From: Ministeria vibrans ATCC 50519
Lineage: Eukaryota > Protista > Filasterea
Assembly: GCA_943704425.1 (NCBI GenBank)
Contig: CALSCP010002371.1
Location: forward strand, 37,933 to 81,058
DNA: 43,126 bases
Direction: 5' to 3'
The position numbers and the translations under genes are program-made. The notes below the pieces were generated by a model. That model did no database searches, was not told the origin of the DNA, and was given only the letters and a program-made list of their open reading frames with translations. Positions 1-30,330 of the stretch are shown here, in pieces (position 1 is the stretch's first letter; the number at the start of each line of letters is the position of its first letter).

Positions 1-730
1 CTATTGGGTGTGGGTGAGTGTTGTTGGTCTCTGTGCCACTCGTGTGGAGCACACTCGCTGCTTCTATTGGGTGTGGGTGTGTGTTGTTGGTCTCTGTGCC
101 ACTCGTGTGGAGCACGCTAGCTGCTTTTATTGGGTGTGGGTGAGTGTTGTTGGTCTCTGTGCCACTCGTGTGGAGCACACTCGCTGCTTCTATTGGGTGT
201 GGGTGAGTGTTGTTGGTCTCTGTGCCACTCGTGTGGAGCACACTCGCTGCTTCTATTGGGTGTGGGTGTGTGTTGTTGGTCTCTGTGCCACTCGTGTGGA
301 GCACACTCGCTGCTTTTATTGGGTGTGGGTGAGTGTTGTTGGTCTCTGTGCCACTCGTGTGGAGCACACTCGCTGCTTTTATTGGGTGTGGGTGAGTGTT
401 GTTGGTCTCTGTGCCACTCGTGTGGAGCACACTCGCTGCTTTTATTGGGTGTGGGTGAGTGTTGTTGGTCTCTGTGCCACTCGTGTGGAGCACACTCGCT
501 GCTTCTATTGGGTGTGGGTGAGTGTTGTTGGTCTCTGTGCCACTCGTGTGGAGCACGCTAGCTGCTTTTATTGGGTGTGGGTGTGTGTTGTTGGTCTCTG
601 TGCCACTCGTGTGGAGCACACTCGCTGCTTCTATTGGGTGTGGGTGAGTGTTGTTGGTCTCTGTGCCACTCGTGTGGAGCACGCTAGCTGCTTTTATTGG
701 GTGTGGGTGTGTGTTGTTGGTCTCTGTGCC
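1..730. repeat. 63-bp tandem repeat array (about 11.5 copies visible, runs off the window start), probably intronic in the DNAJC5-like gene
   Basis: The unit ctattgggtgtgggtgagtgttgttggtctctgtgccactcgtgtggagcacactcgctgctt recurs every 63 nt. Only a few sites vary (gagt/gtgt, cactcg/cgctag, ctat/ttat). There are no unique spacers. Confidence 0.97.
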
Positions 731-812
731 GATGTGTCGTCGCTCGCTGTGTCACTCGTGTAGACCACACCGACTATATAATTTATAATTATATTAAACC
801 ATTATATTGTAG

Positions 813-1680
813 GACATTGCAACGGCGCACAGTATTCTGATGGACGAAAAGAAGAGAAAAATCTATGACAAGTATGGCATGAGTGGACTGAAGATGTACG
901 AGCAGATGGGCGAGCAGGGCTTTAGCCTGTTCATGAAGGTACCAAGAAGGAGAAAAGAGGAGAAGAAAAATGATAATAATAATAATAATTATTATTGTCA
1001 TTAATTTTTTCTTCTGTGCAGTTTGACAATCCCTTCTGCAAAGCGTGTTGTTGTCTGCTTGGAATTGTGACACTGGGATGGGGGCTATGCTGCTGCTGCT
1101 GTTGCTGCTGCTGTGGGGTGTGTGCGCCCAACGTGGATCCGGAAGCGGAGGCGGAGGAGGCAGCCAAGGCAGCACAGGCGGCAGAGCAGAAGGAGATGGA
1201 CCAGCAGGCGGCAGCACGTATGGCTCCGCCTCCCGAGGCTGAGATGCCCTCGTTTGCTGCTCCTACGAGTGGGAGTGGGACGGTGCAAGCAGGTGTTGTT
1301 GAGGAAGAGGAGGAGGACGAAGAAGAAGATGATGTGGTTGCTGGTACGAGATAGACAGAGGGAAAGGAGAGAGAAAGAAACAAAGTGATCGAGAGAGAAA
1401 CATAAGACACTAAATGAGATACTTTTGATTCGTTTTAGCACAACCGCAGGCACAAACGATTGCTATGGAGCCAGTGAGCTCACCCTCAGCTGCGCCTGAG
1501 CCACCCACCACTCAAGACACCGACAAAGAGGAAGATGAGCCAACGGAGGAGCCCCCGTCGTATGCAACGGCTGCGACGACCAATGACGATAAGAAGAATG
1601 ATGATGATCAAGGGGGCGATGTGCGCAACGACGATGACGGTCCTTCGGCGCCTGGTTCGCCCCTCATCACTGCGTTATGA
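813..1680 (+). CDS. DNAJC5: Cysteine-string protein (DnaJ subfamily C member 5-like), 3' exons 813-938, 1022-1343, 1439-1680; 5' part lies upstream of the window
   Basis: Exon 813-938 encodes the end of the J-domain and the CSP linker (DIATAHSILMDEKKRKIYDKYGMSGLKMYEQMGE). The next exon encodes the cysteine string (KACCCLLGIVTLGWGLCCCCCCCCCGVCAP). GT-AG junctions are phase-compatible through to TGA at 1678-1680. Confidence 0.85.
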
Positions 1681-1880
1681 ATGAAAGTTCCCATTTCGAC
1701 CTTTTGTTCATCGTCATTTGTTATTCGTCTATCAATAAGAGACTTACACAAAGAACCTAAACAGAATAAAAAGCAAAAAGCCGAAAAAGATTCAATCTAT
1801 ATTTTAGATTCACACCACAATTGAAAATTTTATTAAAACATTTGATCTCCTCTTCCCGTCCTTTTGGTTTCTTTGGTTGT

Positions 1881-4800
1881 ATGCGCCCATTGACGTGTAT
1901 CGCACTGCTGGGTGCAGTCGTGTTGATGGCCTGCGCGCCAGCTGATGCCTTTTTCTGTACCACCGCAAAACAAGCGCTTCGCGTGCCGACTGACGCTGTG
2001 TCTCTCATGAACACACACACACATAGGGGGGCGCCGTCGTCGAAGGAGACGGAATTGCGTGGCCGGCAAAGGGGGCGAATCGGTAGAGAGACAGAAGTTG
2101 CGAGATCGTTTCGTTTGACGCTCTGTTTATTCTGTCTGCTTCAGTGCACTTCTTGCCCCACTGGCACTTACAGCGACGGCGGAGAGAATGCACCTTGTCA
2201 CCAATGCGAAATAGGAGAGTACGGGCCTGCGCCAGGTACGCATTGACGAGAGAAGTGGACTTGTGGGTTTCGTCGCACTCATTCGTGTGTGTGTGTGTCT
2301 CTCTCTCTCCAACTCGTTCGCACTGCTCTTCAGAGGCCTTTGAGTGCCTCAGCTGCGAGCAAGGCCGATTTACACAGATTACGGGGCAAGGCCTCTGCTC
2401 CAACTGTCCAGCAGGAAGAACGTCGGGCGTCGGCGAGTCAGTGTGTGTCGCATGCGAGGCGGGCAAGTCGACGTCGGGCGGTGGCGAGGCAGCCTGCTCG
2501 TCGTGCGCCGCCGGTCGCTACACCCTCAACAACGTCTGTGTCAACTGTCCGTCCGGTCGAACCTCTTCCATCGGCTCGTCCACCTGCACCGATTGCACTC
2601 CGGGACGTTTCAATTCGCTGGCGGGCGCCTCCGCTTGCCCCCTCTGTCCCGTCAACACCTTCTCCTCCTCCGGCTCCAAATCCTGCTCCACATGCAGCGG
2701 CGGAAAGTACTCGCAGCCCGGCAGCAGCACCTGTGTTGAGTCGGTGTGTGGCCCAGGATCAGTACTCATTGTGGCCACGGGAGCCTGTCAAGATTGTTCA
2801 GTAGGAGAAAGAAATTTTTTTTAGGAATATAAACACGTCGTTGCTATACGTAACCCTATCCATTGATATTTCTCTGTTACAGCCGGGAACATTCTCATCG
2901 GTCTCCGTCAGCGTCTGCGTATCATGTGCAGCGGGAAGCTACGCGGCGGAGTCGGGTGCGGCCGTGTGCGACCCCTGTCCCGACGGCAAGTACAACACTC
3001 AGGCGGGACTGGCGACGTGTCTCAGCTGTCCAACGGGTCAGGCAGCCGCCTTTGGCCGCACCTCGTGCATTTCCTGTTCGGCCGGTCGCTTTAGCGATGG
3101 CACCACCGACTGTCAACCCTGTGCGTCTGGTCGCTATTCCACTGCAGTTGGTGCAACAAACTCTGCCACCTGTGTGCCCTGTGATGCAGGTAAAGAAAAA
3201 GAAAATTAATCAAGGGGGTTTTTTCAATATTGTCTTTGTTCATATGCTTGCTAATTCTCTCTCTCTTCGTCTCTTTTTGTTATTCATTCTTTTTGTTATT
3301 CATTATTAATTTTTGTTATTAATTATTCTTTTTTGTTATTCATTCTTTTTTGTTATTTATTCTTTCTTGTTATTCATTCTTATGTCATTCATTCTTTTTG
3401 TTATTCTCTCTTCTTGTTTTTCATTCTTTTTGTTATTCATTCTTTTTTGTTTTTCATTCTTTTTGTTATTCATTCTTTTTTGTTATTCATTCTTTTTGTT
3501 ATTCTTCTCTCTCACTCTCCCTTTCTCTTGATTAGGCAAATTTGCTACGTTGGATTTGGGCGCGACAAGCTGCTCGGACTGCCAGGCGGGATTCTACTCG
3601 GGAAGTGTCGGACTGACCGAGTGCACACAGTGCAGTGCGGTGACAGTGGCACCAGTAGCCGGTGCGTCTGTGTGCGCCTCATGTCCTTTGGATCAGGTGG
3701 CGGCGGGCAATCAGCGCGAGTGTGTTGACCCGTGTGCGTCGAGTCCGTGTGTGCATGGCGCCTGTTGGGCTGGAGGTGTGCCGCATCACTACGTTTGCAA
3801 CTGCACTGATGGCTACACCGACGCCTTTTGCCAGACGGACGTGGACGATTGCTTCGAGCAGCCGTGTCGCAATGGTGCGTCGTGTGTCGACCTTGTTGAC
3901 GGACTCTTCTGTCTCTGTGCCGACGGCTACGAAGGGCTCATCTGCGAGGCGAACACCGACGAGTGTCTCTCCGATCCGTGCACCAATGGTGGCTCGTGCG
4001 TCGATGCGATCAGCGGCTGGTCGTGTGTGTGTGCCGCGGGCTTTACTGGCACTGCGTGTCAGGACAACGTTGACGAGTGTCTTACGACGGTCTGTGAGAA
4101 TGCGGGCACCTGTGTGGATGGCATCAACTCCGCTGTGTGTCTCTGTTTCAGTGGCTTCACCGGTGCAACGTGTGCCCAAGACCTCAACGAGTGTCTCTCG
4201 ACTCCCTGCGCCAATGGTGGCACCTGCAACAACGTCGTCGGTGGCTTCCAGTGTGTGTGTTCATTTGGATACAACGGAGCGACGTGCACCAACGTTATTG
4301 ACGCTTGTCAGTCTGCTCCGTGCCTGCGGGGTGGCACATGTGTGCGAACGGGCGTCGGCCTCTTTGCGTGTACATGTCCCTCGGGCTACGAAGGGCTCCA
4401 ATGCGAACAGGGTACCAACGAGTGCGCCAGTTTGCCCTGTTCTAACGGCGGCACGTGTGTCGACGCCTTCGACGCGTACCACTGCGACTGTCCCTCCGAC
4501 TACAGCGGCAATCACTGCGAAAGTTTCCTCGATGCTTGTGTGAGCTCACCCTGTGTCAACGGAGCCACCTGTAATATTGTACCGCTTCTCAGCGACTTTG
4601 TCTGTGTGTGCGCCTCTGGATTCTCTGGAGTCCACTGCGAGACGGACCTGGACGAGTGCGACTCATCACCGTGCGTCAACGGTGCTACCTGTATCAACGA
4701 AGTGGGCCGTCACTCTTGCGAGTGTCCTGCGGGCCTCACGGGTCTCAAGTGTGACCGCACGCTTACCCCTTGCACCTCGATTCCCTGTCAATACGGCGGC

Positions 4801-7800
4801 AATTGCGGCAACTTGCCCTCAGGCGATTATTTTTGTATGTGCCCCCCTGGCTCGTCGGGTACCTCGTGCGAGTTTACGCTGTGCGACTCATCACCCTGTG
4901 CCAATGGTGCGCAGTGTAATTTTCTGCCGCTTGAAAACAGCTTCAATTGTACGTGTGCGCCAGGCTTCACCGGTGCTCTCTGTGAGTCTGAGGTGCTTGA
5001 ATGCGCGTCGTCGCCGTGCGAAAATGACGGCACATGCATTGAGCAACTCGACGGCTTTTCGTGCTTTTGTCCTAAAGACTTTGAAGGCGTCACCTGTGGC
5101 GACATGGTCTGTGTTGGAACTGAGATTTGTCTCAACGGAGGTACCTGTGAGGGTGTACTGGGCGCTGGCTCGCAGTGCGTGTGTGCCGCTCCCTTTGGTG
5201 GACCCACCTGTGCGGAGGATATTGCCACGTGTTTCTCACAACCCTGCACGAACGGAGCGACGTGCGTTGTGATTGACGACACCACTTTTGCGTGTACGTG
5301 TGTCTCGGGCTACACGGGCGTCGTGTGCGAGACGGAGATTGATGAGTGTAGCAGTGGGCCGTGTCTGAATGGGGCCACTTGCACCGACTCACTCGGAATG
5401 TACTCGTGCGCCTGTCCCGCCGGATTTATGGGCCTCACCTGTGCCACAGCCATTGCCGAGTGTGACTCGAGTCCTTGTGCCAACAGTGGCATCTGCTCCG
5501 AGCCCTCTCCGGGCCTTTTTGTCTGCTCCTGCACCATTGGCTGGGGCGGTGCTGATTGCAGTTTGAACGTTGATGAGGTATGTAATTATTCTATCATAAT
5601 TGTGTTTAAATTTTTGCTTTCGTTTCCCAAAGTGTTTGTCTTCTCCGTGTGGAAATGGCGCTACGTGCACGGATCTATTAGGAATGTACACGTGTGAGTG
5701 TGCAACGGGATTCCTTGGCAATGCGTGCGAGCTCAATGTCGATGAGTGCTCCAGTGGTCCCTGTTTCAATGGTGCCACTTGTCTTGACGGAGCCGGTGCC
5801 TTTGCTTGCGTGTGTGCGTCCGGGTTCCAAGGGACTCTTTGCGATGGAAACGTTGATGAAGTACGCTATTGAATACTATAATAATAATTATTATTATTAT
5901 ATTTTTTCTGGCGCTCATGTTTGTTTGTTTGTTTGTTTGTTTGTTTGTTTGTTTGTTTGTTTGTTTGTTTTTTGTATTTTTTTTTTGTAGTGCCTCTCGA
6001 TTCCTTGTGTGAATGGTGGCTCTTGTGTCGACAGAATTGATGGGTATGCGTGTACGTGTGCAAGTGGATTCACTGGAGCAGTGTGTGCCGAGGTCATTGA
6101 CGAGTGTGCGTCGTCACCGTGTGCCAATGGAGGGCTCTGTGAGGATGCACATGCAGCGTTTGCGTGTGAGTGTGCGTCTGGATTCACGGGGGACGAGTGC
6201 CAGTCGAATGTTAATGAGTGTGTGTCGAGTCCATGTGCGAATGGAGCTCTCTGTGTGGACAGTGCCAATGGCTATGTGTGCAGCTGTACCGTCGGGTTTA
6301 CTGGGGCGACGTGCGAGTCAAATGTGAACGAGTGTGTATCGAGTCCGTGTGCGAATGGAGGAACTTGTGTCGATGACAATGGACGCTTTTTGTGTGAGTG
6401 TGCGAGCGGATACACCGGTGATGTGTGTGCGTTTGATGTGGACGAATGCACGGGTAGTGGACCTAACCCTTGTCAGAATGACGGTGTGTGTGTGAACACA
6501 GAGGGGGGATTCATTTGCGTGTGCTCCGCAGGACTCACTGGTGCTCTGTGTACCGACGACATTGATGAGTGTGCGTCGTCGCCATGTGATGCACTGGGCA
6601 CGCGTCGATGTGAGAATGGTGCCGACGCGTTTGTGTGTACGTGCCTCGCGGGCTATGAAGGATCACTGTGTGCCACGGACATTGACGAGTGTGCTTCGTC
6701 GCCGTGTCAGAACGGCGGCAATTGTACGGATGCAATTGGGGGATTTTTGTGTGAGTGCGGTGCGGCATTTACTGGAGTGCGATGCGACAACGACCCCAAC
6801 GAGTGCGCCTCGTCGCCGTGTCTCAATGGTGCCCAGTGCAACGACAAACTCGGCTCGTTTCAGTGTGTGTGTGCGCCTGGCTACAGCGGCATCCTCTGTG
6901 CCGAGGACGTTGACGAGTGTGCGTCGAGTCCGTGCCTCAGTGGCGGTGTGTGCTCACAGTTGTCTGGCGTTGTTGATTTGTACGTTTGCGAATGTGCCGC
7001 TGGCTACACGGGTGCGACCTGTCAAACAGACATTGATGATTGTGTGTCACAGCCGTGTGCCAATGGTGGGACGTGCTTGGACCGTGTGAACAGTGTCCGC
7101 TGCGCATGTGCGTCTGGCTACAATGGCACGGATTGCAAAGAAGACATTGACGAGTGTTTGTCCTCATCGTCACCTTGCCTCAACGGCGCTACCTGTTTAA
7201 ATACGGTGGGTTCGTTTGCGTGTGCGTGTGCTTTGGGATTTGACGGCATTGACTGTGCGACCAACATTGACGAATGCGCCAGTTTGCCTTGTCTCAATTC
7301 GGGCGAATGTCTCGACGGCGTGAACAGCTACACATGCGCGTGTCTGCAAGGGTTCACGGGAGTTGACTGTGCCGGCGACATTGACGAGTGTGTGGCGACA
7401 CCCACATTGTGTCAAAACGGCGCAACGTGCCAGAATATTTTTGGCTGGTACGTGTGTCACTGTTCTGCTGGCTACACCGGCGATTTGTGCGAGGCGGACG
7501 TGGACGAGTGCGCATCGAGTCCGTGCCAGGCAGGCGGAGAGTGTTCGCAGCCGAGTGCAGGTGTGTATGCGTGTGCGTGTGCAAGTGGACGTACGGGCGG
7601 CCAGTGCGAGTCGGACATTCCCGAGTGTGCGTCGAGTCCGTGTGGTGTGTCAGGAAACTGTCGTTTGGAGGTGGGTGGTAGCGGGTTCCTGTGCGAGTGT
7701 CATTCGGGGTTCACTGGCACGACGTGTGAGACGGCCATTCCCGAGTGCCTTTCGAGTCCCTGTATGAACGGCGGTGATTGTGGCTCGACCCTTGACGGCG

Positions 7801-10800
7801 GTGTGTTTGTGTGTACCTGCACTGTCTCGGGCTACACGGGTGTTCGGTGCGAGGTTAACATTGACGACTGTGCCTCTGGGCCGTGTGCGAGCGGCGGCTC
7901 CTGCGCGGACGGTCTTGATTCGTACATGTGCGAGTGTCCCAGTGGACTGACGGGCGCGCACTGCGAGACGGACGTGGACGAGTGTGTCACGGGCGCATCT
8001 GTGTGTCACAATGCGGGCACCTGTTCGAATGGGCACGGGACCTTTTCGTGTGCATGCGATTCTGGATTTACCGGTGCACAATGCGAGACGGACATTGACG
8101 AGTGCAGTGAGGCGGGCCCGTCCAAGTGTAATCGAGGCACGTGTGTCAACGGCGTCGGTTCCTACACCTGCGATTGTGGCACGGGCTACACGGGCGTTGC
8201 GTGCGAGACGGATATTAACGAGTGCGCGGCGTCGCCACAATTGTGCAACACGGGCACCTGCCGCAATACACTGGGGAGCTTTACGTGCACCTGTCCCGCC
8301 GGGTACACAGGTACACACTGCGAAAGTGATCTGGATGAGTGTGCCCTGTTTGGCAACCCGTGTCTCAATGGGGGGGTGTGCAACAACACACTGGGCTCGT
8401 TTGTGTGTGAGTGTGTACCAGGTTACACTGGCGTTGTGTGTCAGTCGGATGTGAACGAGTGTGACGAAAGTGTCACGGCCTGTTTCAATGGCGGGACGTG
8501 TTCCAACAGCGTGGGGTCTTTTTCGTGTGCCTGTCCAGCAGGCGTGATGGGTGCGCAGTGTGAGACGGACATTGATGAGTGTGCAACGAATGCGTGTCAG
8601 AATGGTGCGACATGTGTGAACACAGTGGGTGCGTTTGCGTGTGCATGCGTCGAGGGCTACACGGGAGTGACGTGTGCGACGGATGTAGACGAGTGTATGA
8701 GTGGCGCAACGCTGTGTCAGCATGGAGGTTCCTGTGTGAATATGGTGGGAGCCTTTACGTGTGTATGTAGCGCGGGACTGACAGGTGAGCAGTGTGAGAC
8801 GGACATTGATGAGTGTGCGTCCAGTGTGTGTCAGAATGGGGCGACGTGTGTCAATTCGCTGGGTACTTTTACGTGTGCGTGTACCGAGGGATTTATCGGA
8901 ACGACGTGTGGCACAGGGATGACGACCGTGAGTGATGGTGGTGTAGCGACGACGTGGATTAGTGGAGGAGGGAGTGCAACGAGTGTTCCAGTTGCTCCTG
9001 CGACTACTGCCGTTGACAATGGAGTGGCTGCGACGTCTGTTGTGGGAGTGGCTGCAACGACTGCCGTTGAGAATGGAGTGGCTGCGACGACTGCTGTTGA
9101 TAATGGAGTGGCTGCGACGACTGCCGTTGAGAATGGAGTGGCTGCGACGACTGCCGTTGAGAATGGAGTGGCTGCGACGACTGCCGTTGAGAATGGAGTG
9201 GCTGCAACAACTGCTGTTGATAATGGAGTGGCTGCAACGACTGCTGTTGAGAATGGAGTGGCTGCAACGACTGCTGTTGAGAATGGAGTGGCTGCAACGA
9301 CTGCCGTTGAGAATGGAGTGGCTGCGACGACTGCCGTTGAGAATGGAGTGGCTGCGACGACAAGTAATGTCGTGACATCAGCAAATACCAATTTTGCTGC
9401 TACAACTGCTGCTGTTGGGGCAATTGCTACTTCTGAGCTAGTTGCTGTTGCAACGTTGACTGTCTCTCCAGCAGACGCAACCATCTCGACTACATCGATT
9501 GCCATTGCTGCTTCGACCATCACAGTGGCGCCGACACCTTCGCCCTTCTCCTTACTTCCCATTTGCACGGCGTCCTCGTGCAACAACGGCGGCACCTGTT
9601 CGATCATGGGCGGCAGTGTCGCGTGTGCGTGTCAGACGGGCTTTTCGGGTGCCACCTGTGCGTCGTACACTGGTCCGTGGGGTGTCGTTACTCTGGATGG
9701 CGATGTGACAGACTTCTGTGCCAGCTGTGTGGCGCGTCAGAATCTCGAGGCGGACCTTGCCAATGCGATCAATGCAGGTCTGGGGGCAAGTACGGCGGCA
9801 CTTGATGTGTCGCAGGTGGTCGTGGACTCGGTTGCTGCAGGTAGTGTGGTTGTGACGTTCCACATTGTGCCAGTCAGCAGTGGACAGAACACGTCAGAGG
9901 CGACTGCCTCACTTATTGACCAGATGTGTCCTGTCGGCTCACTCGCCCTTACCTCTGTCTTTGTGCTGAACGTGACACTGGTGGGCGGCGGCTCGGTGCC
10001 TGTGGTGGCGTCGTGTGACGATGTAGGAGGCGTTGGGTCTAATGTGGGTGGGGGTGGTGTTCCTGTGGTGGTCGTGGCTGCTGCCATTGCCGTCATTCTC
10101 TTACTTTTGCTGCTTCTTGCTCTGCTCTATGTGATACGTCGACGTCGTTTTGTGCGGGGTCACCCGCTAAAGATGTCCAAGGCGGATTCGGCGGCGAGCT
10201 CGCAGCTGGGACTTACCATGGAGAGCATGATGGCCGAGGAGGAGAGTGCAATGGAGATGAACTTTCTTGGGCCGCGCGCGTCGTCTGTTGTGTCTGGCGA
10301 GGGGCGTGGACTTGCTGGTATGGTCACACTTGACACGGCGCCACTTTCCAACGATCACTCGGCGTCTGCGGATGCCTACTACGTCGCCACCACTGATGAC
10401 AACACTCACAAGTCCAGTACTAACTCTGCAAGCTACGAGCCCTTCTCGCGTCGCTCACATCGCACACCCAAGGCGCAGTCACTCCAAGTGGACTCGGACA
10501 TCTACGAGACGGTGGTAGATCCGTTGCAGACGGTCGATGATGTTGAGCCGGAGTATGATACGCTCACGGCGCGAAAGGCAGACGACACAGATGACGAAGT
10601 ATATGACTTGTACCGCGCTCTGTCGAGTACTTATGACAACGGATCGTACCAGCCAACGCGTGACGTCGAGAATACCGTGTACTCGAGCATAACGCGCGAG
10701 GTATCGAATGAGGCGCAATATCAGTCCTTTGGCAGCATCACCAACGAGTCGGGCGCCTATCGGAGCGTTGTGGGCTCACAGGCGGACGAGTCGTCCGTCT

Positions 10801-12611
10801 ACGAGTCGTTTGTGGGCGCTGGTGCGCGTCGTCTCGAGTCGACTGCACCGCATTATGTGAGTCCAGTGCGTCGCGTTGGTGATTCCGATGACGATGACCA
10901 CCAGGATTACGCGAATCTCGAGGGGCGGAGTGGTGGCTACGCGAATCCGCACGAAGACGAGTCGGGTGCCAGTTTTTCACTGACTCACAGTGTTGCGTAT
11001 GCGAATCCCGACGGGCTCACGAGTGCACGCGAGTCGGACACGCTCAGTAAGGTCTATGCAAACCCGGACTATGTGCCGAGTGAGGGCACGGCGAGTGTGC
11101 GTGCGTCTAATGCGACTGCCAGTGTGATCTATGCCAATCCGGAGCCAACTGACTCGCAGCGCACCACGTTTGCCTCCGAGTTGGAAGAGCCCCTGACGAA
11201 CGCAGAGGGTCCGCCGACACTTGAAGTGGTTTCCAATGTGTCATACGTGCCTGCGGAGATGGTGCGCTCTCCACGCGCACAGCCTCCCGCACTTGCTGTG
11301 GTCGACGAGGATGCGTCGTTGCGCGTGCAGTCGATGCCCTTGGACCGTCTCGCTCTGTCGAATGTTAGCATGTCGCGTCGGGCGCACTCGGCCGCTTTGT
11401 TGCGTCCCCCCGTTGACTATGCGGTGGTGCAGTACACGCCCAAGGGCGCGCGTGCGGCGGTGCTTAGCCGAGTGCGAGTGACGGATCAACCAACGGGACG
11501 GAAGGAGGGAGAGGTGCAGCCACTGCTGAAACAACTGTACGCGAGTTCAGCGGTGCTCAAGGTATCGCTGGTGGACAAAGAATTTAATGCGGATGTGTAT
11601 GACCTCGACGACGACGAGGAGCAGCGACGCAAGCGCGGTTCACCCCTGGTGCGTCTTGTGGACGGTAGCATTGGGGTGCTGGTGGCGGACATGCGTGCTC
11701 TGGCGCGCATTGCCCGGTCACGAAGTGACTTTGTGGTCAAGGACAGTGTGGGCGAGAGCGAGTTTGGAAGCATGTTCAGTGGGTATTTGCTGACGGATGG
11801 GCGGCAGGAGCCCGTTGTGCTTATTGCACAGTCGGCGGGCAAGGACGTGCTGGAGAACAATGTGAGTCGGTTTCTGGAGGAAGCGTCGCTCCTCAGCGAC
11901 CTCAACAACGACCATGTGGTTCGTGCGCTGGGCGTTGCGCTCGACACGGACCCCTGGCTGCTGGCCGTTGAGGAGCCGATGTACGGCGACCTGCACTCCT
12001 TCCTTCTTTCCAGTGCCAGTTTGCCCGGCGTGTCCTTCTCCACCGCCGACATGCTGCACCTGAGTCACCAGACGGCGTGCGGCCTTGCCTTCCTTGCATC
12101 GCGACATCTCGTCCACGGCGACGTTGCATCGCGCTCGTGCTTCCTCTTTGCCAACAGCGTTGTGAAACTGGGCGACTTTGGGCTATTGCGTCGGGTGAGC
12201 GAGTCGCGTGTGCACTACGCGAACATCAAGGACAGCGACGAACTGTGGCCATTGCGCTGGATGGCACCCGAAGTGCTCGCAGGCAACCCGTGTACGTCGC
12301 ACAGTGATGTGTGGGCACTCGGTGTGTGTTTGTGGGAGATTTTCCACCAGTGCCGTGCTGTGCCCTATGCCGCATCGCCACTCGAACAGATTGAGTCGCT
12401 GCTCAAACGTGGTCATCGCCTTGCGCCGCCCCCATCCGCTCCGCACACTGTCTACAGTATCATGCGCGAGTGCTGGCAACGCGCGCCGCGCAAGCGAGGC
12501 AATGCCGCGCTTGTGTCCGTGAAACTCAGTGCCGAGCTCAACAGCTGTCCCGTGCGACCCCACGCCGACCTTGGAGGGCTCGTCGAGGCGCACTTGGCGA
12601 CCAGCATTTAA
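1881..12611 (+). CDS. Giant single-pass receptor: Cys-rich repeats, about 44 EGF-like repeats, Thr-rich stalk, SEA-like domain, TM helix and tyrosine-kinase-like (probably pseudokinase) domain, about 3295 aa
   Basis: Hand-spliced exons 1881-1956, 2027-2082, 2145-2235, 2334-2800, 2883-3189, 3536-5577, 5633-5860 and 5991-12611 are all GT-AG and phase-consistent (9888 nt). Signal peptide MRPLTCIALLGAVVLMACAPADA. CxxCxxGxY/F repeats, then DIDEC-type Ca-binding EGF units. TM AAAIAVILLLLLLLALLYVI followed by RRRR. Kinase motifs HGDVASRSC, KLGDFGL, WPLRWMAPE, SDVWALGVCLWEI. Confidence 0.93.
3272..3506. repeat. Degenerate ~19-bp T-rich tandem repeat inside a receptor intron (3190-3535)
   Basis: Recurrent ttttgttattcattct(t) units. 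Confidence 0.8.
9000..9362 (+). repeat. Coding 30-bp tandem repeat (AATTAVE/DNGV, 10 full copies plus partials) forming the receptor's mucin-like stalk
   Basis: gctgc(g/a)acgactgc(c/t)gttga(g/t)aatggagtg is repeated in frame from 9051 to 9350, with partial flanking copies. Confidence 0.95.
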
Positions 12612-12969: not shown

Positions 12970-15900
12970 TTATACAATAATTTCACCCTCGCGATACTGC
13001 GAGAAGGTAAGATCGTGAGCGGAGAGAGAGAAATTTCGCAGTGCGTGTGCGTGGTAAACGTCGAGCAGTGCCTTGAGAGGTGAGGCATGGAGAGAGCGGG
13101 GCGAGTCGGCGACCATGGGTGCCGTGATGTTGGTGGCGGCGAGGGAGAGACGGCGGTGGAGATGGAAGGGCAGTGAGTGTTGATTGGCAAAGTGCACACG
13201 AAGGGCGACCGTGGGCTCGGCAGAGTCGCTTGCGTGGGCTGACCAGGCAAACCCGGCGGGAATGTAGAGAAGCTGGTGGCTCTGTTGCGTGAGAGTGTGA
13301 GTGGGAGAGGGAAGGAAGTGCTCGGGCGTGGAGTCTAGCGTTGAGAGGTCTTGGGAGGGTGTGAGAAGCGCAATGCGGCGATGGAAGTCGTAAAGATTAT
13401 ATTGGAGGGTGCCAGAGAGCACAAGAATCCACGTGTGAGTGTCGTCGGGAGCCGTAAGGAGGGGCGTGCGGCTGTTGGGGGAAGCAATGTAGAGTGACGG
13501 AGTCGCATGGGCCGTCGTGAGCTCATCTTGAGCACTCTGCTGCGCATAGTCAACGGAAAAGAGCCGTGGGATGACGAGGGAGGGCGCAGGTGGGCGAAGC
13601 AGAGCTGGACACATCACTTGGATGTTCCAGTCGAGAATCTGATTGCGTGGCGCGTCAAGAAAGTCAGAGAGTCGCAGGTCGTCCACTGGCAGTTCGGTGA
13701 GTGGTGGTACGATGTCAGACGGAAGGAGGAGTGTGTGTCCACAGAGGCGACGTATGTGCTCGAGCGTCCACTGGTTGCTACTATTGGTGAACAGCACCGG
13801 TTTGGACTGAGCGGCAAATTGCGATTGGAAGTCAGAAGGCGAGAGAGTGACAAGTGAGCGACGGGCAATGTCGGAGGGCGGAGGGAACGCTAGAGGACTC
13901 TCGAGAGCAGCAAGTTTCTTGTTGAGAAGGTCGCGCCAGCGCATGAGTTGACGGGCCGTCTTCTCAATGCTCTGGACAAGCTGGCGGTTCGCTTTTGGAG
14001 TGCCATGCGCTATTGTGTGGCGCAGCGACTTTCCTGTGCCCGTAAGCAGTTCGAGAAGGTCGCGCGCGAATGAGTGGGAGCGTTTTTTGAGGGATTTTTG
14101 AACGCTTTTGACTGTGTGGAAACCATAGAGACACTGGCAGGCGGGCATGGCATTCAGGTGATTGAGCAGCGTGGAGTTGGTCGAGGGAGAGACGGAAAGC
14201 GCCTGTTTGAGGGTGGTGCGTGTGGACAGGACAATCTGGTGTGCGGCGGCGCAGAGAGTGTTGCTGTGGAGGGCCAAGTCGTTGAGGTAGTAGCCGAGAG
14301 AGGACGAGGACATGGCGGAGATGGTGCGGGAGTTTTGAAAGGTAAAGGTGAAGGAGTCGCTGTTGGCGTTGGGGTTGGGGGTAAGATCGGGGGAAGGGGG
14401 CTGGTGCTGTTGCAGCTGCAGCTGAAGCTGTTGGTGCTTGAGGTGGCGGGTGGTTTCAGCGGCAATGAGAGGGCGCATGAGAAGCGCTGCGTGTGAGTTA
14501 AGGCGGGCAATGGAGTGGTAGAGCGCGCTGGGATGGGTGGAGAGGGTCAAAGGCGGGTGAAGGGGGAACGGGTCGGACTGGAAGGACTTGACAAAGGTAG
14601 AGAGAGGCTCAAGGGAGTGAGTGGCGAGTGAGCGGAAGATTGGAGATTGAACGGAGAGGGTGCGTGTACGAAGGCGGGTGGAGATGGAGGCAAGGAAGAC
14701 GTTGAGTTGGAGAGAGAAGGCAGGGGATTGGATGGGACAGGAGGACGAGGAGAGAGAGGGGGAGAAAGGGATGACAAGAGGGGAAGTGACGATGGGATCG
14801 AGGAAGGGAAGATGATGGGAGTAGAGGAGAAGGAGAGCAGAGGGAAGGGACGCGGGGGTTGAAGTAGAGGAGGAGGAGTGGGGACGAAGGAGGGAGATGT
14901 CTGAGGAGTGGGTGTAGAGGGTGATGAAGGCGGTGAGAGGGATGAAGGCGGCGGGAATGGTGGTGATAGCGTCGCGGAGGAGGAACGGAGATGGGGCACA
15001 GAGGTCGTCGGGAGTGGGGAGAAGCAGGATGCGAGCTGGATGGGGGTGGTGAGGGAGGAAAAGGAGACGAGCGCGGAGAGCGAGCGCGGCGAAGGAGGAG
15101 AGAAAGGGGATGGGAAAGCGGGTAGTGTGGGTAACGAGCCAGTCGTGGAGGGGTGTGTCGGTGTCGATGTCGGGCTGGTGGGTGAGACGGGCGGTGGATG
15201 AGGCGTAGTAGAAGACGGTAACGGCAGAGTGGGGCAGGTGGAGGGATCTGGTGAGGAAGGAGGGATGGGCGAGAACAAAGAGAGCCGTGCGGTGGGTGGA
15301 GGCGAGAAGGGACGCTGAGTGGACGTAGGACGGGTTGGTGTAGGCACCCATGACAACGAGGTGGGATTGCGAAAGAAGAGCGGTCGTCGCCTTGTGGGAG
15401 AGCGCAGAAGCATTGAGAGGGGTTGAGTGAACGAGACGGTGGAGAAGGGACTCGACGGAGGGCAGAAGAGCCGGTGAGGAGCCAATGAGAAGGTTGTTGT
15501 CGCGGCGGGTCGCGTTGACGTAGATGAGAACATGGGCAAGCTCGTAGGGCGATGGGAGGGCCAGGAAAAGGTGTGCAGAGGGGTCGAGAAGGAAAGAGCG
15601 GTGCGAGTTCAGGTCGAGTGTCGCGACGTGAACTCCGCGCGAAGACCAGTCGAGCGCAAGAAACTCCCAGATGCCTTCGCAGCAGACGGTCGCGTTGACT
15701 TGTGGCTCAAGGAGCGTGGAGTGAAGTATGAGGACGTGAATGGAGACCATGTCGGAATAGGGATGCAAAGTGTCGAGTGAGCCGTTGAGAAAGGACGGAA
15801 TCAAGTGGGGTGTGAGTTTGGTGGAGACGCGCGGGATGCCATGGAGGCCGGGCACTTCGAGTGCCGGAAGTGGAGTTGGAGGAGGTGCAGGACGAGTGAA

Positions 15901-16863
15901 CGGTGGTCGGTGGCGCTGAGGCTGACTGGTGACGGGTGTGTCGTTGTCGTCGTCGTCAAAGAAGGAGTCCCAGTCGTCATTTTTGTCGCTGGCGCTGTCA
16001 GTGGAGTCGGTGCGTTGCCGTCCGAGTTTGTTGTCGGAGGATTCGTAGCTGTCGGTGTTGTCGCTGCCAAAGAGCTCGTTGTTGAATGGATCGAAGGTGG
16101 CGTCGTCGGCGGTGTCCTGGAAGAGATCAAGCTCCTGCTCCATGTTGACGGTCGTGAACAGGTTGCTTGCAGGCGACTCGAGGTGGGCGAGGTCGGGAAA
16201 GCGCTGGCCGGAGCGCACGCGAAGGCTTTGTGGCTGGGGGTCAACCAGACGTGGTCGCCGATTGTGCTCGTAGAGGGCGGCGCTGAGGGTGAACTCGTTA
16301 GGTCGCGCGGCAAACGCAACATCTGTGGGCTTGTCGAGCCACCAGTGGATGATAAGGCTCGGAAAGTGCCCCTGCAGCAGAGCGGAGGCGGCTGCGTCTG
16401 TGTCGAGCAGCACAAGTTGATTGCGCGTTGGGAGGGCGACGGCGTTGGCAGTTGCGAGAGCGATGAGCGAGTCGGGATTGTCTACGACGAGAACAGAGAC
16501 GAAATGGACGGTGGGCGGGGCGTTGAGAGACGTCGACGGGGATGGCGAGTGTGCGGATGAGAAGGCCCACGAGGCCCCGGCGACGTGGAGGCCGGCGGGG
16601 GCGAGGAGAGGCGCGACAATGTCTTGGTACACGCTGTGCACCGCAATGTCGGCATGGCTCTGTGGATGGGCAAACTGGGCGCGATCAAGCCACGTGGCCT
16701 GGACGGGGAGTGCCGAGGTGGTGGTTGTGTGGGCGTCTTGGGCGAGAGCGAGACAGAGTGAGTCGGAGACTGCAAATGAATAGAGCTGAGTTTTGTCGGC
16801 TGTGACGACGCGGAGGAGGAGGAGAAGGAGAAGGACAAAGATGGGGGTGGGAGTTTGAAGCAT
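12970..16863 (-). CDS. Intronless putative secreted protein (~1300 aa) with a C-terminal degenerate JmjC/cupin-like domain
   Basis: A single long ORF. First ATG at 16863 is followed by a signal-peptide-like segment (IFVLLLLLLLRVVTA). C-terminal motifs FAAQSKPVLF, PSLYIASPNSRTPL, HTWILVLSG and QLLYIPAGFAWSA resemble the JMJD4/6/8-type cupin fold. Confidence 0.7.
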   Translation of the reverse strand: MLQTPTPIFVLLLLLLLRVVTADKTQLYSFAVSDSLCLALAQDAHTTTTSALPVQATWLDRAQFAHPQSHADIAVHSVYQDIVAPLLAPAGLHVAGASWAFSSAHSPSPSTSLNAPPTVHFVSVLVVDNPDSLIALATANAVALPTRNQLVLLDTDAAASALLQGHFPSLIIHWWLDKPTDVAFAARPNEFTLSAALYEHNRRPRLVDPQPQSLRVRSGQRFPDLAHLESPASNLFTTVNMEQELDLFQDTADDATFDPFNNELFGSDNTDSYESSDNKLGRQRTDSTDSASDKNDDWDSFFDDDDNDTPVTSQPQRHRPPFTRPAPPPTPLPALEVPGLHGIPRVSTKLTPHLIPSFLNGSLDTLHPYSDMVSIHVLILHSTLLEPQVNATVCCEGIWEFLALDWSSRGVHVATLDLNSHRSFLLDPSAHLFLALPSPYELAHVLIYVNATRRDNNLLIGSSPALLPSVESLLHRLVHSTPLNASALSHKATTALLSQSHLVVMGAYTNPSYVHSASLLASTHRTALFVLAHPSFLTRSLHLPHSAVTVFYYASSTARLTHQPDIDTDTPLHDWLVTHTTRFPIPFLSSFAALALRARLLFLPHHPHPARILLLPTPDDLCAPSPFLLRDAITTIPAAFIPLTAFITLYTHSSDISLLRPHSSSSTSTPASLPSALLLLYSHHLPFLDPIVTSPLVIPFSPSLSSSSCPIQSPAFSLQLNVFLASISTRLRTRTLSVQSPIFRSLATHSLEPLSTFVKSFQSDPFPLHPPLTLSTHPSALYHSIARLNSHAALLMRPLIAAETTRHLKHQQLQLQLQQHQPPSPDLTPNPNANSDSFTFTFQNSRTISAMSSSSLGYYLNDLALHSNTLCAAAHQIVLSTRTTLKQALSVSPSTNSTLLNHLNAMPACQCLYGFHTVKSVQKSLKKRSHSFARDLLELLTGTGKSLRHTIAHGTPKANRQLVQSIEKTARQLMRWRDLLNKKLAALESPLAFPPPSDIARRSLVTLSPSDFQSQFAAQSKPVLFTNSSNQWTLEHIRRLCGHTLLLPSDIVPPLTELPVDDLRLSDFLDAPRNQILDWNIQVMCPALLRPPAPSLVIPRLFSVDYAQQSAQDELTTAHATPSLYIASPNSRTPLLTAPDDTHTWILVLSGTLQYNLYDFHRRIALLTPSQDLSTLDSTPEHFLPSPTHTLTQQSHQLLYIPAGFAWSAHASDSAEPTVALRVHFANQHSLPFHLHRRLSLAATNITAPMVADSPRSLHASPLKALLDVYHAHALRNFSLSAHDLTFSQYREGEIIV

Positions 16864-16952
16864 GTATGTGAGGGACAGGGGGTTGGAAGTTGAATACAAT
16901 AAAAGTGAAAGTAGATCACCAATAATTAATAAAAATTAATAAATTTTTTTAT

Positions 16953-23603: not shown

Positions 23604-24032
23604 TGTGCGGGTTGGTGGAGAGGCGGGGGAAGGAAGAATCACCGCAAGGCGTGACAGACAAGGAAGTACGAAAGAATTGAAAAAACGAATACAATAACAA
23701 ATGACTGAGTGAATTGAGGCAGTTTGGTTGTTTAAGCTTCGCACCAGCTTACAGCTACTTACTGAGCGTATCGTAAACTAACAAGCTGCATGCGACATGC
23801 CGGTGAAGTCACAAACTGCAAGTCACAATGTACGGTGGATTCGCATGCACGTACGATCGCCGCGAGTGGTAACTCAGTCGCAAGAAACTTACTCAAATAA
23901 CAACAATGTAAAAATCAATTTGTCTCAACTCTCAATTCTCATTTCTTTTCATCTTCAGTTCTTCACACATCTTTGAGCCTTAGAGCACCTTTTTCTTATC
24001 AAGTCTTCTGAAAAGCTCTTTTCCTTCTGATC

Positions 24033-28705
<4,673 letters not shown>

Positions 28706-28975
28706 CACATACATATATAATAATGACGTTCGCGCCAGTTAATATTAATGTACAATATTAAAATAACAATAAAATAAGAAACATGAATGAGCTGTACTCA
28801 AATAATAACATAAAATATTTAATAATTATTATTATTATAACAATCATTAATTATGACTATTATTTTACCTGTTCTTAATTTCACTTCATTTATAATAACA
28901 ATTATTATTATTATTTATTGAAATTCACGTCATAATAGTATTGAGTACAGCTCTCGATTTATTTATTTTCCTAAA

Positions 28976-28978
28976 TTA

Positions 28979-29050
<72 letters not shown>
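28976..29050. repeat. (TAA)n intergenic microsatellite
   Basis: Run of ata/taa triplets upstream of the Rab gene. Confidence 0.95.
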
Positions 29051-29052
<2 letters not shown>

Positions 29053-29107
29053 TACAACTCACAAGTGACAACAAAATTTTTATTTCTTTTAATTGTCGTA
29101 CATTTCC

Positions 29108-30330
29108 ATGGAGGAAACAGACGGCGGCATCTCCGAGGAGCATCTGTACAAGGTGCTGGTCATTGGCGACTATGCGGTTGGAAAGGTACAAATCCCGAAA
29201 ATCTCACTTTAGGGTTCGACGCATCGCATGCTGCGCGGCCGCATGTGCTGCCTGTCTCTGAGGGTGTCCTGGCCGAGCCGTGCGGCGGGGCTGCACGCTG
29301 ATTTTGTCTGTATTTCTCTTGTCATGAGTTCATCCAAAATGTTCCGTCCTTTGTGTTTGCTCAGACTTCGCTGATTCGAAGATATGTCGACGGAATATTC
29401 ACGCCAAACTACAAGCTGACGATTGGAGTGGACTTTGCGCTTAAGGTAACCGGTGGAAAGCTATGCAAATCCTATTGGGATTGTCCCCCAAAACGCAAAA
29501 AATGAGTCTTCAGCCTTTTGAGACTTTTGTGTGTTTTCCCAATTCCGTTTGTCAGCAACTCGACTGGGAGAACGAGTCCAAGATCAACCTCCAGCTGTGG
29601 GACATTGCGGGACACGAGCGGTTTGGACATATGACGCATGTTTACTTCAAGTAAGAGAGAGAGACACACACACACACATTGACTGAATAGTGTTTGTCTC
29701 ACTGTGTTGCGTCTGTCAGGTACGCCATTGCTGCAATTGTGGTGTTTGACGTGACGCGACCCGCGACGTTTGAGAGTGTACTAAAGTGGAGCGATGAGGT
29801 CAACGACAAAATCTCCCTGTCCAACGGCGATCCGATTCCCATTGTCATGCTGGCCAACAAGGCGGATTTGGAGCCGGAAGAGCTTGACAAAGAAAAGGTA
29901 CGGCAAAGAATGAGAATGGTACACTCACCACTTGTATTGATCACTTTGTGTGGGCCTGGTGGGCGTGTAGTTGGATGCGTTTTGCGTCGAACACGGATTT
30001 CTCGCGTGGTTTCCCACGTCAGCCAAAGACAACACAAACATTGGTTGGGCCTCTTTCGATTGCCATTGTGGTTGCTTTAACCTCTCTTCCTGTTTCTTGC
30101 TTGTTTTATTTTCTTTTGTAATGTTTTTAGAGGGTGCCTTCAACAGATTGGTTGAGGAAATTCTAAAGGTCGCAAAGGAAAACGAAAACAAGCCACGAGA
30201 GCAATTTGTAAAGGTGAGTGACTGGATTGCATTGCGGTGCGGTAGGGTGTCTGACCGGTCATTGTTGTAGGTAACCAGTGAGGCCACCGCCAGTTCCAAT
30301 TCAACTACCAGTACCCAATGTTGCGAGTGA
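29108..30330 (+). CDS. RAB32: Rab32/38-family GTPase, Rab32B type (7 exons)
   Basis: Spliced product EHLYKVLVIGDYAVGKTSLIRRY, YKLTIGVDFALK, LQLWDIAGHERFGHMTHVYFKYA, LANKADL, WFPTSAKDN, ending in the prenylation motif QCCE*. WDIAG is diagnostic of Rab32/38. Confidence 0.92.

Follow-up and report, generated by a model that had tools for sequence, protein, structure and literature searches.

Clade-specific receptor tyrosine kinases (RTKs) are reportedly found in the unicellular holozoans (filastereans, choanoflagellates and ichthyosporeans), as laid out by Suga et al. 2012. In animals, the pseudokinase receptors ErbB3/HER3, PTK7/CCK4, RYK, ROR and EphA10/EphB6 are thought to signal via partners and docking sites. 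The RTK repertoires of holozoans are clade-specific and turn over rapidly (PMC4342544). Among the unicellular relatives of animals, receptors of this class have arisen anew on many occasions. Here we describe a gene of the filasterean Ministeria vibrans that lies at positions 1881–12611 of a 43,126-nt stretch of contig CALSCP010002371.1, hereafter the window. As judged from its predicted splicing, the likeliest product of the locus is a single type I membrane protein of ~3,290 residues. We lean, with moderate confidence, towards the view that this protein is a lineage-specific receptor pseudokinase that would be phosphorylated in trans and act as a phosphotyrosine scaffold.

The receptor shares with the clade-specific holozoan RTKs a signal peptide, shuffled EGF and Cys-rich modules, one transmembrane (TM) helix and a C-terminal domain of the tyrosine kinase (TK) group, and its nearest kinase domains are those of choanoflagellate TKs. 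Like the animal pseudokinase receptors, it combines the RTK layout with a kinase fold minus catalytic residues (here Lys to Gln, Arg to Gly and Asn to Ser) and a Tyr-rich tail, but its ectodomain is unrelated to theirs and orthology is absent (best identity 39%; no supported grouping). The receptor does not represent a new kind of system; it belongs, as an unusual case, to the receptor kinases of protists, a class already known to change fast. A sequence-only reading of the same DNA had proposed an undescribed receptor. This stands insofar as no description of the architecture was found in the literature, a search that did not extend to the original catalogue of filasterean RTKs by Suga et al. 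2012, where the receptor may be listed; on the other hand, EGF arrays joined to a TK recur in the genome, and clade-specific RTKs are the published rule (PMC4342544). The receptor joins an extremely long, adhesion-type ectodomain to a kinase fold that is probably only scaffolding, and such a protein is a natural case for asking if pseudokinase receptors, and phosphorylation in trans, are older than animals. Aggregation of Ministeria vibrans deploys adhesion and tyrosine-kinase genes (PMC13366479), a behaviour that provides a direct biological context for the receptor.

The features of the gene are as follows. Positions are those of the window, and residue numbers (for example Gly1278) refer to the frame starting at 6009.

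1881–1956, + strand: exon 1, with the ATG and a signal peptide (MRPLTCIALLGAVVLMACAPADA, followed by FF), read from sequence
1957 (8-exon model) or 1983 / 1998 (7-exon model), + strand: donor at the uncertain 3' end of exon 1
2027–2082, + strand: candidate 56-nt microexon, unverified; frame-keeping, both flanking donors beginning GTA
2145–2235, + strand: exon 3, first two CxxC..G.Y units; acceptor 2144, donor 2236 (cagGTACGC)
2236–2333: intron, donor cagGTACGC
2334–2800, + strand: exon 4, nine CxxC units (Ephrin_rec_like); Pfam PF07699, E 7.3e-11
2801–2882: intron, donor tcaGTAGGA
2883–3189, + strand: exon 5, six CxxC units (Ephrin_rec_like / TNFR-like); Pfam PF07699, E 2.9e-16
3190–3535: intron, donor cagGTAAAG
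3536–5577, + strand: exon 6, last three CxxC units, then EGF 1–16 (3733–5559); Pfam EGF, E 1.3e-89
5578–5632: intron, donor gagGTATGT
5633–5860, + strand: exon 7, EGF 17–18, flanked by phase 0 introns; Pfam EGF, E 7.7e-16
5861–5990: intron, donor gaaGTACGC
5991–8909, + strand: first part of exon 8, EGF 19–43; Pfam EGF 5.3e-139, EGF_CA 2.7e-103
8910–9551, + strand: Thr/Ala/Val-rich stalk, 214 aa, from Tandem Repeats Finder and composition; no Pfam family
9564–9659, + strand: EGF 44, membrane-proximal, by the six-Cys pattern; Pfam EGF 19.6 bits, slightly below the cut-off
9660–10046, + strand: juxtamembrane alpha/beta module, 129 aa, candidate SEA-like from AlphaFold models and the GSVVV motif
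10047–10130, + strand: Gly run and single TM helix (VPVVVVAAAIAVILLLLLLLALLY), then the stop-transfer VIRRRRF; read from sequence
10131–11726, + strand: cytoplasmic tail, 532 aa, acidic and Ser-rich, with 25 Tyr; no Pfam family
11727–12611, + strand: predicted pseudokinase domain of the tyrosine-kinase group, short C-terminus and stop; Pfam PF07714, E 9.4e-58

Kinase domain and cytoplasmic tail

The C-terminal domain that the sequence-only reading had assigned to the TK type is indeed of that group. PK_Tyr_Ser-Thr (PF07714) matches at aa 1910–2166 of the 6009 frame with an E value of 9.4e-58, the match to Pkinase is weaker (7.4e-25), and the domain carries the TK-specific motif PLRWMAPE. In the PDB, all of the best matches are tyrosine kinases, with the receptors EGFR, Trk, ALK and MuSK at the top. 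Alignments with TrkB and EGFR place VAVK opposite VLIAQ, with the VAIK Lys replaced by Gln1941 (11829–11831), and HRDLA(T/A)RN opposite HGDVASRS, with HRD changed to HGD (12114–12122) and the catalytic Asn to Ser2043 (12135–12137). The G-loop reads GESEFG and has lost its second glycine. Retained are Asp2038 of the HGD motif, DFG (12174–12182), the alphaC Glu and 29 columns that are invariant across the genome's kinases; together with PLRWMAPE, these suggest that the kinase fold has been kept under constraint. Of seven other kinase domains of the genome that were aligned with it, all keep HRDxxARN, and the VAVK lysine is kept in five of the six aligned there, the exception being the kinase on contig C945 (L006:1501-2280, +), which has VAVN for VAVK and GFG for DFG. 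That protein, with a Receptor L domain and an EGF array, is thus another receptor of the genome that is predicted to be a pseudokinase.

Judged by the motifs that are customarily used, the receptor described here has a predicted pseudokinase domain. With its key catalytic residues lost, the receptor would probably signal as a docking platform. The dead domain would not phosphorylate; it would pair with, or be a substrate of, the active tyrosine kinases of the cell. Candidate partners are kinases of the Src type or those EGF-array receptor kinases of the genome whose catalytic residues are intact, by analogy with ErbB3 and PTK7 in animals.

The sequence of the tail is in keeping with such a role. 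The long Tyr-rich linker noticed in the sequence-only reading corresponds to this 532-aa segment, in which Tyr makes up 4.7% of the residues (25/532) versus 1.5% in the ectodomain, and which has a net charge of -26. YAN[P/L] occurs five times at 10908–11141, spaced by 10–25 residues, with one NPDY in the same cluster region, and the tail also has several acidic Tyr sites, among them YETV and YDTL. A sixth YAN, in the form of YANI, lies in the activation loop (12216–12227). SH2 domains of the Grb2 type have pYxN as their consensus, and PTB domains bind at NPxY; once phosphorylated, the YxN and NPxY motifs and the acidic Tyr sites would recruit SH2 or PTB adaptors. Both readers and writers for such a scaffold occur in the genome, as SH2 and SH3 loci on one side and catalytically canonical TK paralogues on the other. 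SH2 matches cover at least about 22 loci, and SH3 matches number 88, including a locus with 3xSH3+SH2. The phosphotyrosine scaffolding that the sequence-only reading had suggested for the cytoplasmic part thus agrees with the degenerate catalytic residues, the YAN[P/L] series, NPDY and the SH2 complement, all of them features predicted from motifs.

The kinase domain is highly divergent. Its identity to paralogous kinases of the same genome is 28–34%, and when the last 1,019 aa were searched exhaustively with HMMER against 1.84 billion representatives, no hit exceeded 39% identity. The two top HMMER hits were considered as orthologues and rejected, as they are proteins with many tandem kinase domains. 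Named proteins in the ten top-scoring hits include four from choanoflagellates (three unnamed transcriptome open reading frames (ORFs) and one annotated tyrosine kinase), one from a tunicate and one from an oomycete. A word search with exon 8 residues 1290–2200 returned distant kinases only, such as ROS. No relatives of the tail were present in the 150 best representatives, where the non-kinase matches touch only the TM helix and an EGF module. In a quick maximum-likelihood tree, the end branch of the receptor kinase measures 3.41 versus a median of 0.77, and the kinase falls outside the clade of the genome's receptor kinases with no supported placement. Tie1/Tie2 and the Eph receptors are likewise RTKs with EGF-like or Cys-rich (Ephrin_rec_like) modules, but the receptor has no ephrin-binding domain, Ig, FN3 or SAM, and its kinase is no closer to Tie or Eph than to Trk, ALK, ROS or EGFR. 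An assignment as an Eph receptor was rejected, since only Ephrin_rec_like is matched and the EphA2-type ligand-binding domain, FN3 and SAM are missing.

Several points weigh against a trans-phosphorylated pseudokinase scaffold. Pseudokinase status is read from motifs alone, some kinases without the VAIK lysine, such as WNK, are active, and a Lys is found three residues past Gln1941 (VLIAQSAGK). No Grb2-type pYxN reader or Grb2 orthologue was identified in the genome, and no orthologue of the receptor gene was available for measuring selection. The displaced Lys could instead serve an atypical but active RTK that, upon ligand binding, would autophosphorylate its own tail by means of this residue or of an unusual ATP-binding mode; the catalytic Asp of HGD, DFG, the alphaC Glu, PLRWMAPE and the activation-loop Tyr are all retained. 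We regard this as unlikely, because three independent changes at catalytic or ATP-binding sites occur at once (Lys to Gln, HRD Arg to Gly, Asn to Ser), in addition to the loss of the second G-loop glycine, and because the very long branch fits a relaxed constraint on catalysis.

Gene model and ectodomain

The window is eukaryotic nuclear DNA with a guanine-cytosine (GC) content of 50–60% and short introns. The core of the receptor gene is a 2,200-codon open frame at 6009–12611, which with an acceptor at 5990 defines exon 8 as 5991–12611. Upstream coding pieces in other frames join this exon via canonical GT-AG introns that keep the frame, starting from a hydrophobic N-terminal leader at 1881–1949 that was read from the sequence. 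The introns 5578–5632 and 5861–5990 are in phase 0 and cut precisely between EGF modules (..NVDE/C.., with the slash at the junction), and exon 8 opens on an EGF cysteine, with neither an initiating codon nor a leader ahead of its EGF array. These two observations argue for one gene. Two joined models are free of internal stops, one of 9,888 nt with eight exons including the microexon, and one of 9,858 nt in which the 1983 or 1998 donor is spliced directly to 2145. All five firm donors begin GTA, as do those of the microexon model (GTACCA, GTAGAG), in contrast to the GTGCCG and GTGTCT of the direct splice; the 8-exon structure is therefore slightly favoured by the splice-site sequences over the 7-exon structure.

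The one spliced ORF of the sequence-only reading is favoured by GT-AG sites, by a frame kept at all junctions and by the lack of stops, but is unconfirmed, as no transcript or protein record accompanies it, and the microexon 2027–2082 and the direct splice are not distinguished. No transcript and no annotated or predicted protein of the receptor gene appeared in any protein search, and a word search with exon 4 returned just four distant Cys-repeat proteins, none of them from this gene. The splicing model consequently rests on the GT-AG sites and the open frame, and with respect to expression and splicing this result also counts against the scaffold assignment. The absence of any transcript fragment or predicted protein, be it for exon 4 or for the last 1,019 aa, from very large protein collections, together with the ambiguous 5' exon structure, would fit a silent or decaying locus, or of more than one gene, for instance a secreted Cys-rich/EGF protein upstream and a separate exon 8 product, the 8-exon fusion being an artefact of reading frames. 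Such an explanation appears quite improbable. The frame is open over 6.6 kb, the six cysteines are intact in all 44 EGF modules, both joined models are free of stops, the introns between EGF modules are in phase 0, exon 8 starts at an acceptor on an EGF cysteine and lacks both an initiating codon and a leader, and neither a stop nor a TM segment occurs in the exons upstream. The receptor locus is a real, well-formed gene model, with 5' splicing and expression among its main uncertainties.

The ectodomain begins with 20 CxxC units (motif count) distributed over exons 3 to 6. The sequence-only reading had noted Cys-rich repeats here, and the upstream coding pieces do match Ephrin_rec_like in Pfam, with TNFR- and NCD3G-like matches as well; exon 3 taken singly gives only weak matches to Ephrin_rec_like, NCD3G and TNFR_ELAPOR1_6th (E 0.0013–0.01), all under gathering scores. 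The tandem EGF modules, put at about 43 by hand in the earlier reading, number exactly 43 by the six-cysteine pattern (16 + 2 + 25, at 3733–8909) and are separated by six residues in nearly all cases. The one further EGF that had been seen after the stalk is the 44th, at 9564–9659, and the TM helix is likewise found, spanning 10047–10142 together with its RRRR stop-transfer. Pfam detects EGF, EGF_CA and hEGF in the 6009 frame. Consensus sites for calcium binding are present in 20 of the 44 modules, for O-glucose in 29 and for O-fucose in 26; O-FucT and GT90 family genes are present in the Ministeria vibrans genome, which does not imply orthology to the Notch-modifying enzymes.

The long EGF array, with many calcium-binding, O-glucose and O-fucose consensus sites, is a feature shared with Notch, and the Notch-like ectodomain of the earlier reading holds for this array only. 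Pfam found no LNR, NOD, ankyrin, FN3, Ig, SAM or ephrin-binding domain in any exon, in line with the earlier remark that LNR and ankyrin repeats are not visible. With no LNR, NOD or ankyrin domain, the receptor is not a Notch. An assignment to Notch was rejected also in view of the missing NODP and RAM regions and of an intracellular part that has a kinase fold where Notch has a transcriptional co-activator.

The stalk contains a core of 12.3 copies of a 30-bp unit (10 aa, VENGVAATTA) at 8998–9361, detected by Tandem Repeats Finder. The Thr-rich repeat stalk described earlier is real in terms of this repeat and of its Thr content (20.6%), but the label 'mucin-like' is loose, because the stalk contains little Pro and no more than a moderate share of Thr (Ala 25%, Val 17%, Ser 6.5%, Pro 2.8%). 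The transmembrane mucins (MUC1, and MUC3/12/13/17 with EGF-SEA-EGF) have in common with the receptor a Thr-rich repeat stalk, an EGF module, an alpha/beta module with G/SVVV (the slash marking the cut), a TM helix and a tail with Tyr sites. They differ in having neither a kinase domain nor a 43-EGF rod, and the receptor stalk is short and Pro-poor, with SEA membership not demonstrated. The order of stalk, EGF, alpha/beta module and TM helix, which is like that of transmembrane mucins (PMC13643018), and the 29 O-glucose and 26 O-fucose consensus sites, with O-FucT and GT90 family genes in the genome, could also be accounted for by a mainly structural cell-coat or adhesion protein, that is, a glycocalyx 'mucin' with an EGF rod whose cytoplasmic part would serve anchoring or trafficking instead of phosphotyrosine signalling. 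We consider this rather unlikely, as the stalk is short (214 aa) and poor in Pro, and a 294-aa kinase fold with repeated YAN[P/L] motifs would hardly persist for anchoring alone. In the pseudokinase scaffold that we prefer, the ectodomain would bind a ligand on a surface, in the matrix or on a neighbouring cell. An adhesion or force-sensing role of the receptor can only be inferred.

The juxtamembrane module

A module of predicted alpha/beta structure lies between EGF 44 and the membrane, the position that the SEA domain occupies in MUC3/12/13/17. It contains GSVVV at 9840–9854, with Gly1278 and Ser1279 at 9840–9845, 68 residues ahead of the TM segment. This sequence is the exact motif of cleaved SEA domains (the autoproteolysis motif G/S[VI]VV). 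From the composition of the module, 0.011 occurrences are expected in it, and the motif is found once in the whole six-frame window. Two single-sequence AlphaFold runs with different boundaries gave the same beta-alpha-beta-beta-alpha-beta(-beta) order, with a predicted local distance difference test (pLDDT) score of 48 and 41, and in both of these low-confidence models the Gly1278–Ser1279 bond falls in the beta2-beta3 turn. The module also sits at the place of the SEA-like HD domain of Notch (PMC6586460); in the same source, RTKs are treated as receptors without SEA-like domains.

The SEA-like module proposed in the sequence-only reading has GSVVV at a juxtamembrane site in its favour, but not the family or fold searches, and these weigh against the SEA step. 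Pfam SEA (PF01390) has no match in the receptor protein at E values up to 10. It had no match in the six-frame genome scan either, and the control genomes of the same scan likewise gave none. A fold search with the first AlphaFold model reached a best Z of 6.8, against generic ferredoxin-like domains, and no SEA structure was among its top 50 matches, a result to be read with the low confidence of the model (pLDDT 41–48 over the two runs). Foldseek on the same model returned nothing at E <= 0.001, and in the ESM Atlas an SEA cluster turns up just at a score of 0.84, which is a lead and not evidence. The module has no paralogue in its own genome, the sole copy being the receptor itself. Among JGI metagenomes, 599 pattern matches yielded 0 confirmed cases, and PDB sequences gave only a chance match to CD81 at E 0.2. 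Taken together, an SEA identity of the module is plausible and unproven, and we place its likelihood at somewhat under an even chance.

If the module were a true SEA domain, the chain would be cleaved between Gly1278 and Ser1279 as it folds; non-covalent contacts would then hold the huge ectodomain in place, and load could pull it off. These predicted steps are the least supported of the proposed mechanism, and self-cleavage with force-dependent shedding of the ectodomain is speculative, being possible but unsupported beyond the motif. A broader and doubtful conjecture is that a self-cleaving, SEA-type module was already present in a unicellular relative of animals and is here wired to a dead-kinase docking platform for phosphotyrosine readers, instead of to a mucin tail or to a Notch-type transcription switch. 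Tyrosine phosphorylation would in that case read the mechanical loss of the 43-EGF rod, and the giant receptor kinases of this organism would hold at least two juxtamembrane self-cleavage modules, SEA-like in the receptor and ZU5-like (HxS) in the paralogues described below. If the GSVVV module is an SEA domain that does cleave itself, a device of mucins that is related to the Notch switch would date from before the origin of animals.

Other receptor kinases and neighbouring genes

Further large receptor kinases are encoded elsewhere in the genome.

Contig C86: six Reelin subrepeat-B units, EGFs, TK
Contig C1961: Reelin-B, many EGF modules (20 and 17 Pfam-matched stretches in two overlapping frames), TK
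Contig C945: Receptor L domain, EGF array, TK
Contig C2736: EGF array, TK

The recurrence of an EGF array with a TK on these four contigs makes giant EGF-rod receptor kinases a family theme of the genome. What marks the receptor gene within this family is a dead kinase that evolves fast, together with a juxtamembrane module of its own. In contrast to the EGF-array RTKs of the same genome, it shows a kinase identity of only 28–34% to them, a position outside their clade on a very long branch, degenerate catalytic motifs and a GSVVV module without a paralogue.

The receptors on C86 (L032:554-10000, -) and C2736 (L036:3919-9999, +) have in common a juxtamembrane module of about 150 aa that is unlike the GSVVV module. 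It ends with ..GTLRHLSVIAG.. or ..GELHHLSVMVG.. directly ahead of the TM helix, and the HLSV motif may be a self-cleavage site of the ZU5 type (H-x-S).

In the window, the receptor gene is accompanied by other coding sequences. An upstream neighbour at 840–1680 (+), about 200 bp ahead of the receptor ATG, is composed of pieces reading ..RKIYDKYGMSGL.. and includes a run of nine cysteines (..GLCCCCCCCCCGVC..), which suggests a cysteine-string (DnaJC5-like) protein; two short pieces of it had no match in Pfam. Downstream, an intronless open frame of 1,309 aa at 12970–16899 (-) converges on the 3' end of the receptor gene and has no Pfam match at E <= 0.001. Positions 1–730 are occupied by a 63-bp tandem repeat of 11.6 copies with 96% matches that reaches the edge of the window, and the GC content falls to 0.36–0.42 at 24001–30000 versus 0.50–0.60 elsewhere.

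A receptor of another type is predicted on contig C155. Bases 3–7730 (-) hold a 2,576-aa open frame with DUF285, Laminin_G_3, EGFs, a Receptor L domain, a seven-transmembrane region and a TK. The seven-transmembrane region matches the secretin/adhesion-type 7tm_2 family (E 7e-29, aa 1753–1986), and the kinase is a canonical tyrosine kinase (E 5e-73, aa 2292–2553). By its domain matches, this frame is a fusion of a G-protein-coupled receptor (GPCR) and a tyrosine kinase. GPCR-TKs are described from choanoflagellates and sponges and not from other holozoans (PMC12716839), and the protein on C155 in the Ministeria vibrans genome would widen the range given there.

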